Positions 23,143-33,556 of a stretch of 64,000 nucleotides of DNA are shown here, piece by piece. Position 1 is the first letter of the stretch, and each line of letters begins with the position of its first letter. A model generated the notes under the pieces. The model did not search any database, was not told the origin of the DNA, and was given only the letters and a program-made list of their open reading frames with translations. Origin of the DNA: Saccostrea cucullata (lineage: Eukaryota); the NCBI RefSeq assembly GCF_032062105.1, contig NW_026929140.1:62001-126000 (forward strand), written 5' to 3'. The translations under genes were made by a program, and so were the position numbers.

Positions 23143-23206
23143 ATGAAGTCACAATCCCTGGCAATAAAGACTACGCTGTTTTGCATGGTGTCTATAAGTT
23201 TGACAG
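23143..23206 (+). CDS. Gene B exon: signal peptide
   Basis: aaag|ATG..ACA G|gtgatt; MKSQSLAIKTTLFCMVSISLT. Confidence 0.65.
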
Positions 23207-26200
23207 GTGATTTCTTTGTACAATCTTTGGTTACATAGAATATTTTTAAAGAAATTCATAATAGTCATAATTTAAAATAACTAAAAGTATATGACGATGA
23301 TTAACATGTTCCAACGAGGCTATGTGGCAGGAAATTGTTAGAGTCGCAAAGCGATTTCATGATTAAAATTGTTTACCTTCACCCCTTCCTTTCGGTACAT
23401 AAAGGACCAGTCAAGAAAATTAATACCAGGGTAAGAACATTAAAAAGGTTAATGGACAAGTAGTTTTGGGGCATTCAATAGGATGGGACAAGCATTTCTT
23501 TCATTTGTACGAGTGAATAAACACTTCAAAGCTATAAAGATGTACTCTTAAGTATGCTTGCTCATCTTACATTTGTTATGCTATAAAGAACAAATGCAGA
23601 AATAAATAATTTCTTGAATTCATAGTTAATGAGGCATATCTCGTATCAATTTGATGTTGCGTAAATCTAATGTACGTATTACGTCAGATTATAAAGCAAA
23701 GTGTTTATGACATGACGTTACCCTCAAAATGGAAATTCACAAAAAATAATCACAATGGAGAATGATCAGTTCTCGCTCTAATTAATGCAAGACATCGTTT
23801 CCTCATAAATACAATGTACTTCCGAATTAAGGGTTTACCTATCTGCCGCCTCATCTACTGCATCTTTCTAGATCCTTGAAACTCCGTGGAGGGGTGAAGC
23901 TTGTATTAGACATTTCTTTTTAAAATCCTATTGTGTCCAATGAAAGTCATATCCGACGGTTTGGCAGGCCAGGGCATCACACAGATATCTTTTGGTCAAC
24001 ACTAAAACAGCCTTGGGTAAATTAAATTAAAATTTTGATTTAATTAAAGCAATTGTAAAGAAACTATAATAGTCGCAAAAAGTAGTTGATTACACAAATT
24101 ACGTGCCACAAAGAACTGATTTATTGTTTTCAAGCTTTGTGATGGTACATTGATTTTCGTAGTTGATATTTGATTTTTTTATTGGATAATTGTTTAGAAG
24201 TCACATTGCTTATAATAATTTCAAAAAATCATACCATTTTATCATGTAATTTTTAGAAAAATATCTTTTAAATGAAAATTTGTTTATCGTATGTAAAGTG
24301 ATATATAACCCTGACTTAAATTATCAAACCAGGGGCTCCTCTTTTCTAACAATATAAAGCTGACATTATATACAAATCTGTATTCTGCCTCCGACCACGT
24401 GTCCGTATGACTGGAAATATAAAGATAATTTGAAATTGAGAACGTATGCCAGATTTGCAAAATTTCATCGAAAATTAAAACAGAATTGTTAAACTGAGAG
24501 AGTACACAAATATCAAATGATTTACTTTTACACGACGCTGGATATTTCCAATGAAAAATCATCTACTAACAATTTCAGAATATCTATAATTTTTCCAAAT
24601 CAGTACTTCATGTATCTAAAATTTTGTAACATTTTTTTTTCACTGTATAAATATATTCGATAATTAAGATTATATTTATTAATGTTTGAAAATGCAGAGG
24701 TGGCTCTCATATTCCTGGAACATTAAAATGAAAAATGGATCATATAGTCCTCATTTAACTCAATTAGGTTGCATGTTATCCAAAATCAAAATTTAATGTC
24801 ACAAACATATATTTTTGAAAAAAAAATCTTTAACTGAATGGTTTCTACACCTTACAAGTGGAAATTATCTATACTTTACCTCCCTCTCTGACACTTATTA
24901 AAGTTGTCATTTTAATTTAACTTTTCACACAAGATGAGGATGATCTACTGTGGATTTATACTTTTTATCATTCTGTAAGAAAAGAGACCAAAACTTACAT
25001 ATATTTTTTGTACCCGTCCAACTCTGGTGAAAAATATTGCCTTGTCATGAAATTCAAAATATACATAAATAATACTATGTCAACTATGGTGCAAATAAAT
25101 GGTTAATTATTGTGAGAAGATAGATGAAAAAAAAAAATGAAAATCTCGTATTTTGTTGCATCGAGATATAATTTGTTACTCGAATCCGGAATACCGACGT
25201 TTTTAAAAAGAAATATTTAAGTAGGTAAAATTTCAAAAATGTAGTGCTTTCTTTCGATATCCAAATACAAACAAGTGCAAATAAAAAATAAAATTTTAAA
25301 GGATATGAATGTGTAAGTTTTGAATAAATGAGTTTCTTCGTTTAACAATGACTGTCTAAATTAACATATTTTCAGATGCAAGTTGGATGTGGTTTTGTGA
25401 AACAGATGGTAAGTAGGCTGCAAGTGGAATATTCATGTATCATATGATACTTGTACAATTGTACATTCAATATTATATTTTTTCATTTTCTATTTTTATG
25501 CACTTTTAAAATTTCAACTCAAATGGAGATTCTCAAAAGAGGTTTTAATAAAAATTTCTAGAATGGTTTCAAGATTTTATCACTAATTGTACGTTTATAT
25601 TTTAAGAATGTGTTCCATTTTTTCGCGTGATAAAATGCAGACAATGTACTTAATGGATTCCTATTACAAATCTAAAATTAATAAATTAGTGTTAAATATG
25701 TTAATATGTTTTACCTTGATAATGTTTCCATTGTAGATCCCTGTCATGCTGCAAACACGACAGCACCTTACCAACCAGAACTACGAGCCAAAAACTGTCC
25801 TTTTAATAACAATCCCTATTGTGATCGCTTCATAACTCCAGGCTGGTACAGATTTAAGAATGACATGTTGAATCACCCCCCAGGCTTGTTTAGTTGTGGA
25901 GCAGTGTACCCTTCTTGGCTTAATGGTAACTTAAAAATATCACGAATGACAACATTTCTTTATTTGGCTTTCTTTTTTCATTGCTTTTCTTTTCTTAAGT
26001 TGGCAAATCTAATATGTGCTTCAATTCTGCATTTTCACGATCATTTTTTCCACTGAATGTATTTAAGCATTAATTTAACCTAAGATCATAATATTTAGCA
26101 AGAAAACACTGAATATCATAAAGTATTTATAGACATTATTATTATATAATATATACATACACATGTATATACAGATCCTGAGACGTGTTACTACCCCAAA

Positions 26201-32200: not shown

Positions 32201-33556
32201 CCAAATTTAATTGCTCAATTTATATAGATATAGAAAATAGAAAAATACTTTTTTATGTTACATAACATGTAACATGAGTGATCATAATTGTCATCAGATG
32301 TTAACGTTTTCACAGTTCTTCCCCAACCCCACCTTTCCCCCAAGTTGCATTAACAAAAACTTTAGCATGAAGTTATATATATCTGCCTGAAATACACAAA
32401 AGGTGTGTTTTAATTTGAAACAAAACAAAACAATATTCCATTTTTATATTTTTCTTATGATTGTTTAATATGCAATTGTTTTTAATTTTTTTCAATTATC
32501 TTTCTCCTTTGCAAAATAAGTGAAATTTTGAGAAAGACATAAAAATGAACCGCTGGAAATTACATTGCATGGTTGAATAAGGTGCCTAGGAGCAAAATAG
32601 GCATCAGCATACAGGTAGCAACAGGATTAGCAATTAAAAACAGCATTGCCTGCACCATCATTATCAAATAAAGATAAAAGTAGCATAACTACGCTTTGAA
32701 CTATTCAAAATCCTAGTAGCATCAGAAAATCTATTTCTAGCAGAAAATGGAGAACAGACAAAGAAAACTGGTTTATTCAAGATATCAATGCAATGTTTGG
32801 TGAAATATAATGTACACTATGATTATATAAAACGATTTTATTGCTTTAAACTGCAATGTTTAAATCATCCAAGTTTGTTAGCATGATGCTTCTTCAGGTA
32901 GCAATGTCTTTACTTTAAAACAGGAAAGGTAACTTCAGGATAAGGATTACTTAATCGGCAAAGAAAGAAAGAATTCAAATCAACACAAAAAGCATTAAGA
33001 AAGAATTCAGATCAACAAACAAAGGTTTTTTTTTTATAAATAAAAAAAATCAGCATGAATATGTTGGAGCAAAAATTTTTTCCCTGCACTATGAAACTAC
33101 AATGTACGTGTAGCTTGGTCTGAAAAAATTGTAAGCACATTTGCAGTTAAATCTCAGTTTTTGTTTCAGTTTTATCTTGGAAATGTTACCACACGAATAA
33201 AAGTAGGACAATATAAGTCCATACTACTTTAGACAATATACCCTGTGAACATGAAAAACTGTTAAAGAGAAGGGGTAATAATCAACAAGAAATTGTATAA
33301 ACTGCTATATGTGTTTTATTGATTGAGAATTGACACTTTTATTGCTGTTAAAATAATTTCTTTTAGACAAAATGTCCGACGGCCTTGGCAGAAAGAGGAT
33401 ATTTATATTCAATCAAAGAAACTGGTTAATTTAATTGACAACTACGAGTCACCGGAAAATCGATACACATATTTGAAGATTCCAGAGCATGTTGTCTCCA
33501 AAGAAGAGAGGCAATCTGATTTCAACGTCTACTGTATGATAAATGATGTGCAGTAA
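23143..33556 (+). CDS. Gene B: type-I transmembrane protein with two D8C (UMOD/GP2/OIT3-like) domains and a tyrosine-motif cytoplasmic tail, 440 aa
   Basis: Exons 23143-23206, 25376-25408, 25737-25925, 27510-27674, 27997-28134, 28422-28622, 29067-29246, 29369-29434, 29817-29913 and 33367-33556 sum to 1323 nt, are all GT-AG and phase-compatible, and contain no internal stop. A probable 5' UTR exon ends at 22991 (aag|gtcagt). Confidence 0.85.
23850..24000 (-). mobile_element. Decayed Tc1-like transposase remnant
   Basis: Minus-strand translation ICVMPWPAKPSD resembles the Tc1 WPA.SPDL motif; boundaries uncertain. Confidence 0.35.
25376..25408 (+). CDS. Gene B exon (33 nt, DASWMWFCETD)
   Basis: ttttcag|AT..GAT G|gtaagt; phase 1-1. 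Confidence 0.7.
25737..25925 (+). CDS. Gene B exon: D8C-1 N-terminal half
   Basis: DPCHAANTT..YCDRFITPGWYRF..SCGAVYPSWLNG; tag|..G|gtaac. Confidence 0.9.
26172..26957. mobile_element. TA-flanked MITE with an internal 21-bp tandem array
   Basis: TIR cagatcctgagacgtgttactacc / ggtagtagcacgtctcagggtctg; TA TSD; (gcgtttcgtgcaaaccgtgta)-like units at ~26205-26440. Confidence 0.85.
27308..27348 (+). ncRNA. Minimal type-I hammerhead ribozyme motif (Penelope-type), core variant
   Basis: ttgtc-CTGAGGA-a-gggac(agtgc)gtccc-GAAT-attt-gacaa: stem I TTGTC/GACAA, CUGANGA box, stem II GGGAC/GTCCC; the GAAA box reads GAAT. Confidence 0.6.
27510..27674 (+). CDS. Gene B exon: D8C-1 C-terminal half
   Basis: GTLPTRQNEEVERSVCKVGFNNTCLKRVTIRIKHCCSFNAYCLPSLGACSERYCF. 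Confidence 0.9.
27997..28134 (+). CDS. Gene B exon: inter-domain linker
   Basis: aag|GT GAA..TCA G|gttagt; GEEDSSCEQIIPFWMVTENERKLSTTPPRKPSSGENNKLLSEFCSS. Confidence 0.8.
28422..28622 (+). CDS. Gene B exon: D8C-2 N-terminal half
   Basis: DPCKTNNLPK..PCDRTLLPGWYKA..SCGAIYPVWMEG. Confidence 0.9.
29067..29246 (+). CDS. Gene B exon: D8C-2 C-terminal half
   Basis: GIHPRVNEGIVKRKICIAGPELGFSKSCCQENDYIYVRNCGRHIAYCLKPLNKCEERYCL; not in the ORF track. Confidence 0.9.
29369..29434 (+). CDS. Gene B exon: juxtamembrane stalk
   Basis: tag|AT AAC..TAT G|gtaagt; DNNAPCTDHATGDKSNESFLLY. Confidence 0.8.
29817..29913 (+). CDS. Gene B exon: transmembrane helix
   Basis: DSQSQLSVIVTALVMITLLVSASALIIVAFKKR: long hydrophobic stretch followed by a basic stop-transfer; phase-2 donor AG|gtttgt. 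Confidence 0.85.
33367..33556 (+). CDS. Gene B last exon: cytoplasmic tail
   Basis: ttttag|A CAA.. matches the phase-2 donor; RQNVRRPWQKEDIYIQSKKLVNLIDNYESPENRYTYLKIPEHVVSKEERQSDFNVYCMINDVQ*. Confidence 0.75.

Follow-up and report, generated by a model that had tools for sequence, protein, structure and literature searches.

Tandem D10C modules, a transmembrane helix and a tyrosine-bearing tail in an oyster protein: a candidate receptor family of bivalves

Introduction

To our knowledge, the D10C module (D8C in Pfam) is known only from secreted or glycosylphosphatidylinositol (GPI)-anchored vertebrate proteins that trap fimbriated bacteria. In UMOD and GP2 it forms, together with a beta-hairpin, the decoy module seen in PDB entries 7P6R/S/T, 7Q3N and 7PFP. 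Both proteins act as decoys, and N275 of UMOD is the FimH-glycan site (PMC8930769). Here, we analyse a 64,000-nucleotide (nt) stretch of Saccostrea cucullata DNA (contig NW_026929140.1, positions 62,001 to 126,000 of the forward strand; hereafter the window) and the gene LOC134279892, which occupies positions 23143-33556 of its plus strand. The product of this gene has a fold homologous to the UMOD/GP2 decoy module and shares with it the DPC start and the words WYRF and WLNG, the WLNG-T sequon being kept in module 1. Unlike UMOD and GP2, it lacks the EGF, ZP and GPI/cleavage context and has instead tandem modules, a predicted transmembrane (TM) helix and a 65-aa tail.

D8C-TM proteins of other bivalves belong to the same family (Crassostrea virginica LOC111099976, Ostrea edulis XP_056015360.1, Mytilus trossulus LOC134713698, Pecten maximus XP_033742344.1 and Solemya velum KAL5015331.1). 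They share their layout with LOC134279892, namely one to four D8C modules, a TM segment and a cytoplasmic tail, and all are uncharacterised. Their linkers can reach hundreds of Ser/Thr-rich residues, and their tails are diverse, with NPxY plus PPxY in many (the sister subfamily below), a short basic type in some and a long type rich in tyrosine and acidic residues in others. A first-pass annotation of the window, made from the letters alone, had noted that it knew of no characterisation of such an architecture. Our search of the literature on D8C/D10C combined with transmembrane, invertebrate or oyster agrees, in that it yielded no paper that characterises the architecture; bivalve transcriptome papers just list 'uromodulin' among regulated genes.

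CED-1, Draper and MEGF10 are type-I phagocytic receptors with Cys-rich repeats outside and NPxY and YxxL adaptor motifs inside. The logic of their tails resembles that of the NPxY+PPxY sister subfamily, but their ectodomain fold (EGF/EMI) is unrelated to D10C, and LOC134279892 has no NPxY. Transmembrane adaptors (LAT, SIT, SCIMP, LIME1 and GAPT) also have disordered tails with acidic tyrosine motifs, but almost no ectodomain. Matches to this group were sub-threshold look-alikes (Pfam SIT, E 0.11 on protein P0006; Atlas SCIMP/LIME1/GAPT, 0.77-0.83 for TM plus tail, all <0.9), and since all these scores lie below significance we do not claim homology. A functional analogy is offered by receptors of the hemITAM type (ITAM, immunoreceptor tyrosine-based activation motif), such as CLEC-2, Dectin-1 and the oyster CgCLec-HTM, which act via Syk through a single YxxL in a short tail; unlike LOC134279892, they are type-II C-type lectins. 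A YxxL/hemITAM-Syk pathway with CgCLec-HTM has been reported in oysters (review PMC12842671).

Results

LOC134279892 is expressed as a spliced, polyadenylated transcript

The first-pass annotation had proposed a complete 10-exon, 440-aa open reading frame (ORF) at 23143-33556 and had named one junction, 29913>33367, in advance as a test. The model is borne out by the transcript contig Logan SRR26159590_3210 (L020; 2223 nt, coding sequence (CDS) 75-1397, intron-less). L020 aligns with the window in 11 collinear blocks of 96-100% identity, with block borders exactly at the splice sites, and these blocks correspond to one exon of the 5' untranslated region (UTR) and the 10 coding exons. L020 covers the junction 29913>33367, hence the TM exon is spliced to 33367. 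At its 3' end L020 carries an A-run absent from the genome, which, together with the collinear splice-bordered blocks, identifies it as a spliced, polyadenylated mRNA. LOC134279892 is a real gene, expressed as poly(A) RNA. Every intron has AG/GT borders and the exon phases are compatible, being phase 1 throughout save for the TM exon, which ends in phase 2. The parts of the transcription unit are as follows; each exon is present in the transcript.

22919-22992, plus strand: non-coding 5'UTR exon (L020 bases 1-74, 100% match; donor GT at 22993); the contig begins here, and the true start may be further upstream
23143-23206, plus strand: coding exon 1, with the ATG and a hydrophobic N-terminus (putative signal peptide), ending in phase 1; kept in the paralogue
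25376-25408, plus strand: coding exon 2, a 33-nt micro-exon whose WFC supplies the Cys flanking module 1 on its upstream side; same micro-exon in the paralogue, WFC/YYC kept in homologues
25737-25925, plus strand: coding exon 3, encoding the N-terminal half of the first D10C module (module 1; DPC..WYRF..WLNG) with the N39 sequon; 84% identical in the paralogue, Pfam and fold assigned on P0001
27510-27674, plus strand: coding exon 4, encoding the C-terminal half of the same module, with codon 131 at 27614-27616
27997-28134, plus strand: coding exon 5, inter-module linker, predicted disordered (predicted local distance difference test score, pLDDT, <50 at residues 153-186), with two flanking Cys
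28422-28622, plus strand: coding exon 6, encoding the N-terminal half of the second D10C module (module 2); the genome holds at least 41 related exons
29067-29246, plus strand: coding exon 7, encoding the C-terminal half of the same module; best Pfam stretch 246-322, aligned to GP2 C1-C10
29369-29434, plus strand: coding exon 8, stalk, with a conserved C-T-D word and the N339 sequon
29817-29913, plus strand: coding exon 9, predicted transmembrane helix, 97 nt, ending in phase 2; the paralogue exon is equal in length and phase
33367-33556, plus strand: coding exon 10, for the cytoplasmic tail, with the stop codon; paralogue tail 43% identical
33367-34374, plus strand: last L020 block (coding exon 10 plus 3'UTR)
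33557-34374, plus strand: 3'UTR to the poly(A) addition site; L020 matches to 34374, followed by the non-templated A-run

The 440-aa product of L020, P0001, was found by a protein search with exon 25739-25924 as query, and it shares a cluster with XP_062618289.1, named 'uncharacterized protein LOC134279892 [Saccostrea cucullata]'. P0001 holds the 11-residue segment encoded by the micro-exon 25376-25408. The joined window CDS also encodes 440 aa and departs from P0001 solely at residue 131, where the window has Cys and the transcript Gly; P0001, identical save for this residue, served as the database stand-in for the window protein in homology and structure work. An acceptor of the linker exon at 27964 was considered and rejected, as paralogue and transcript both put the acceptor at 27997. 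At codon 131 the window reads Cys (KHCC) in a column where Gly is invariant in all 16 aligned database homologues. Either an assembly error or a rare allele that puts an unpaired Cys beside C8 would account for this.

Both ectodomain modules match the D10C fold

The layout read in the first pass (putative signal peptide, D10C, linker, D10C, stalk, TM, tail) is upheld by the transcript, Pfam, profile and Foldseek comparisons, and the predicted helix. P0001 matches Pfam PF23283 (D8C_UMOD, the domain of UMOD, GP2, OIT3 and VWDE) in two stretches at 38.1 bits (cut-off 27). A family profile built from 16 oyster homologues and compared with PDB retrieves the decoy modules of GP2 (E 2.6e-16) and UMOD (E 4e-14). 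Foldseek on the AlphaFold2 model returns the UMOD/GP2 decoy modules at E 1.3e-8 to 1.6e-5 and probability 1.00 (TMt 0.66-0.83, 27-31% identity over ~131 columns) and nothing besides them at E <0.1, the next match having E 0.2. Judged by these Pfam, profile and Foldseek matches, both modules are true D10C domains. In the model, they mostly have pLDDT 70-90, against <50 for linker, stalk and tail. Exon-by-exon Pfam searches at E up to 10 gave no matches and single-exon phmmer searches of PDB nothing relevant; half-modules are too short, and domain identity was therefore taken from the whole protein. The Pfam scan of P0001 detected no EGF domain and no ZP polymerisation module.

The cysteine pattern departs from that of UMOD and GP2. 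Module 2 has all ten canonical cysteines, C1-C10, in register with GP2 in the profile-to-GP2 alignment. By reading of the sequence, module 1 of the clade lacks the C3/C6 pair, and each module contains two extra cysteines that would form an oyster-specific extra pair. The second extra Cys ('AYC') occupies the column of GP2 R165 and UMOD N275, the FimH-glycan site. This replacement, which holds for the oyster family, weakens any parallel with the glycan-bearing FimH decoy of which the first pass spoke. Single cysteines also flank each module (WFC, SSC, EFC, APC). The FimH-binding high-mannose sequons of UMOD and GP2 are N275 and N65. The module 1 sequon N39-T-T, a possible counterpart of GP2 N65, lies four residues after C1, and N65 two after C1; an N39-type sequon after C1 is common to 10 of the 24 relatives scanned.

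The product is a predicted type-I membrane protein with conserved tail tyrosines

A hydrophobic N-terminus with a predicted helix at residues 5-17 makes up the putative signal peptide. The modules are joined by a 46-aa linker, one third of which is S/T/P. On the Kyte-Doolittle scale, the best 19 aa of the TM segment (from residue 357) average 2.68, and AlphaFold2 predicts a helix across residues 344-380. The product of LOC134279892 is thus predicted to be a single-pass type-I membrane glycoprotein with a disordered cytoplasmic tail of ~65 aa. Because the TM exon is 97 nt long, its skipping shifts the frame; in silico, the outcome is a short alternative C-terminus and a 367-aa secreted protein. 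In S. cucullata this form is a prediction from exon length, and a counterpart is known from Saccostrea echinata, whose RefSeq isoform X2 (P0088, 383 aa) is a TM-skipped secreted form.

All four tail words listed in the first pass are present.

33398-33415, plus strand: DIYIQS, residues 389-394; Tyr in 6/6 clade members, five relatives with Y-[EV]-K-[PQ] and three of them with YEKP
33437-33454, plus strand: DNYESP, residues 402-407; Tyr in 4/6, Phe in one, absent from one; SP peculiar to LOC134279892
33461-33487, plus strand: RYTYLKIPE, residues 410-418; Y-x-x-[LI] then PE in 6/6, YxxLPE in the wider family
33524-33553, plus strand: C-terminal NVYCMINDVQ, residues 431-440; VYC-x-IND in 4/6

We aligned the tails of six related clade members. 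In this small sample, the columns of the five window tyrosines have a mean identity of 0.68 versus 0.30 for the other tail residues (permutation P-value ~0.005). The alignments indicate preferential conservation of the tail tyrosines in paralogues and orthologues, with tyrosine-centred short linear motifs as the only well-kept features of the tail. Beyond the clade, a membrane-proximal Y-[ED]-x-P recurs across the wider oyster family (YEKP, YEEP, YDEP, YDKP, YEIP), and a YxxLP(E) word stands at a fixed place in its tails. Distant oyster genes with other ectodomain layouts keep the same motif order: YE[KE]P/YDEP, YEMP/YETS, then [DE][DE]GGYEQLP or NVYDELPE. A tail-only word search found no match beyond the protein itself. 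Ratios of nonsynonymous to synonymous substitution rates (dN/dS) between LOC134279892 and its paralogue P0086 are 0.12 for module 1, 0.18 for module 2, 0.44 for the tail and 0.66 for the linker; with dS ~1, hence saturated, these values are rough and suggest, as roughly, purifying selection on the D10C modules and a looser tail.

The D10C-TM layout is bivalve-wide

P0086 is the product of LOC134248291, a paralogue on the minus strand of another contig of the same genome (C2535, 70001-90000). It is 61% identical to the window protein and keeps every LOC134279892 exon in order, length class and phase; the exon model of the C2535 paralogue reproduces P0086 exactly. The intron between the TM and tail exons measures ~400 nt in LOC134248291 versus 3.4 kb in LOC134279892. 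Also on contig C2535 is LOC134248300, with product P0017; this relative has a single module and a 133-aa tail in which a Y-x-D-[LI] word is repeated (YADL, YVDI and three copies of YTDL), plus YDQL and YQAL. Across the 1.17-Gb genome, at least 41 places match the D10C half-module exon.

Every full-length relative of P0001 is an oyster protein (S. echinata, S. cucullata, O. edulis, C. virginica and Magallana gigas), named 'uncharacterized', 'uromodulin-like' or 'mucin-like' in RefSeq. P0001 and the nearest S. echinata protein share just 62% identity, which argues that the family evolves quickly. Pfam-confirmed D8C plus TM proteins also occur in M. trossulus, P. maximus and S. velum. The D10C-TM layout is therefore bivalve-wide and not special to LOC134279892. 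By their sequences, the tails across bivalves are of two adaptor types, Tyr/acidic or NPxY+PPxY. A coral protein with seven D8C modules and a TM segment (P0014) is a ZP protein and was left out of the receptor count, as were P0052 (Mya) and P0068 (Pinctada), which fall below the Pfam D8C threshold.

D10C-like exon pairs of two further genes lie in the window, at 1933-3390 (minus strand) and 56770-57461 (plus strand). They flank LOC134279892, making the locus a small D10C gene cluster. The window also contains transposable-element remnants, namely three reverse-transcriptase (RVT_1) fragments and one ORF with a Tc1/mariner-type transposase helix-turn-helix, at 7171-7614 (plus), 19977-20330 (minus), 48509-48964 (plus) and 35908-36546 (minus). 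Within intron 3 of LOC134279892, two adjoining tandem arrays at 26230-26440, one with 6.1 copies of a 21-nt unit and the other with 2.5 copies of a 33-nt unit, give long spurious ORFs on both strands.

Discussion

We propose that LOC134279892 encodes a cell-surface receptor in which engagement of the ectodomain is coupled to adaptor recruitment by tail tyrosines, most likely through phosphorylation and Src homology 2 (SH2) domains; to this proposal, drawn from sequence, we give slightly less than an even chance. Engagement or clustering of the D10C ectodomain would recruit cytosolic adaptors through the tail tyrosines. The most likely route would be phosphorylation and SH2 docking at the Yxx[P] and Yxx[L/I] words in their acidic context, and the YxxPhi words would probably drive internalisation too. 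Phospho-dependent docking is favoured because Y-[ED]-x-P is unreadable by AP-2, because the tyrosines have acidic surroundings and because oysters have the reported hemITAM-Syk pathway. Adaptor recruitment also gains from the conservation of the tail tyrosines and from the NPxY and PPxY of the sister subfamily, which are adaptor motifs too. Phosphotyrosine signalling by the tail is plausible on these grounds; ligand, phosphorylation and partner identity are what we infer for LOC134279892.

A number of observations weigh against this proposal, in addition to the small tail alignment and the saturated dS. YESP, which the first-pass annotation had likened to the SLP-76 sites bound by Vav and Nck, is unique to LOC134279892; at this position its paralogues show YE[IAT]L, with Phe in one and the site missing from another, so that this analogy is not supported. 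The first motif of LOC134279892 is YIQS, with the E-K-P residues lost, where relatives keep Y-[ED]-x-P, a potential pYxxP docking site for SH2 domains of the Crk/Nck/Vav/Abl class, and the orthologue pair P0089/P0090 shows a Y to F change at motif 2. Conservation of the tail tyrosines in relatives stands for the six clade members and fails for the closest O. edulis relative (P0091/P0002), whose tail lacks these motifs. The tail words fit no canonical immunoreceptor motif, as the first pass had recognised for the ITAM and for the inhibitory counterpart (ITIM). YTYL and YCMI lie 18 residues apart, an ITAM being defined by 6-12, and position -2, which in an ITIM ([S/I/V/L]-x-Y-x-x-[I/V/L]) is S, I, V or L, has Asn in both NVYCMI and NRYTYL, the paralogue having His there. 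The acidic triad of a hemITAM (DEDGYxxL) is missing from PENRYTYL and is approached in single-module relatives only (EEGGYEQL, DDGGYEQL). We also know of no ligand for any invertebrate D10C module.

The tail might instead serve trafficking only, with unphosphorylated YxxPhi words read by AP-2 and related adaptors, so that bound material is internalised or transcytosed without kinase signalling, as by GP2 on M cells. YxxPhi and NPxY motifs have established roles in sorting and endocytosis. Three tail words fit YxxPhi (YTYL, YLKI and YCMI), the best-kept tail word of the family is YxxL, and the NPxY and PPxY of the sister subfamily are classic endocytosis and ubiquitin-ligase motifs. By sequence, YxxPhi sorting would explain three of the five tail tyrosines equally as well as SH2 signalling. 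However, the most widely kept membrane-proximal word, Y-[ED]-x-P, lacks the hydrophobic +3 residue needed by AP-2, and the acidic flanks of the tail tyrosines resemble kinase substrates. We regard a purely endocytic receptor as somewhat unlikely. The endocytic and phosphotyrosine roles are in any case mutually compatible: YxxPhi words and NPxY/PPxY sister tails point equally to internalisation, and both signalling and internalisation may coexist.

Less probable, in our view, is a membrane-tethered protective or adhesive mucosal glycoprotein, a mucin-like barrier or decoy that is perhaps shed or TM-skipped and whose tail would serve biosynthetic sorting only. Consistent with it are the relatives with long Ser/Thr-rich mucin-like linkers and mucin-like names, the decoy function of UMOD and GP2 (PMC8930769), the predicted 367-aa secreted form with its S. 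echinata counterpart, and the module 1 sequon near the position of GP2 N65. Yet the linker of LOC134279892 is short, its residue at the UMOD N275 glycan position is Cys, P0001 has no ZP polymerisation module, and preferential conservation of tail tyrosines is not expected of a passive anchor. The same conservation makes it very improbable that the tail words arose by chance in a disordered, fast-evolving tail and serve no specific function. Such a tail would fit the low identity and relatively high dN/dS between paralogues, the lack of conservation of YESP, the motif-free O. edulis relative and the matchless tail-only search, but the tyrosine columns show roughly twice the conservation of the other residues (P-value 0.005), and the same motif order appears in oyster genes that are more distant and differ in ectodomain layout.

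In a more ambitious version of the receptor proposal, bivalves would have turned the UMOD/GP2 decoy module into an immunoreceptor ectodomain. By binding to the D10C module or its glycan, a microbial adhesin or other ligand would cluster the receptor, Src/Syk-type kinases would phosphorylate the conserved tail tyrosines, SH2 adaptors would drive phagocytosis or cytokine output, and TM-exon skipping would supply a soluble decoy. This full scenario we consider doubtful.

LOC134279892 was already in RefSeq, uncharacterised, and the value of the present analysis thus lies in a functional hypothesis, not in gene discovery. What is new is the reading, suggested by sequence comparison, of the bivalve D10C-TM proteins as a receptor family with adaptor-type tails. 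This family joins the D10C fold to a TM helix and to tails of the Tyr/acidic or NPxY+PPxY type, and it suggests an ancestral or parallel role of the D10C module as a receptor ectodomain. Molluscs have no adaptive immunity. Overall, we suggest that the family provides a concrete candidate for the sensing or uptake of microbes at the mucosal surfaces of filter-feeding molluscs.

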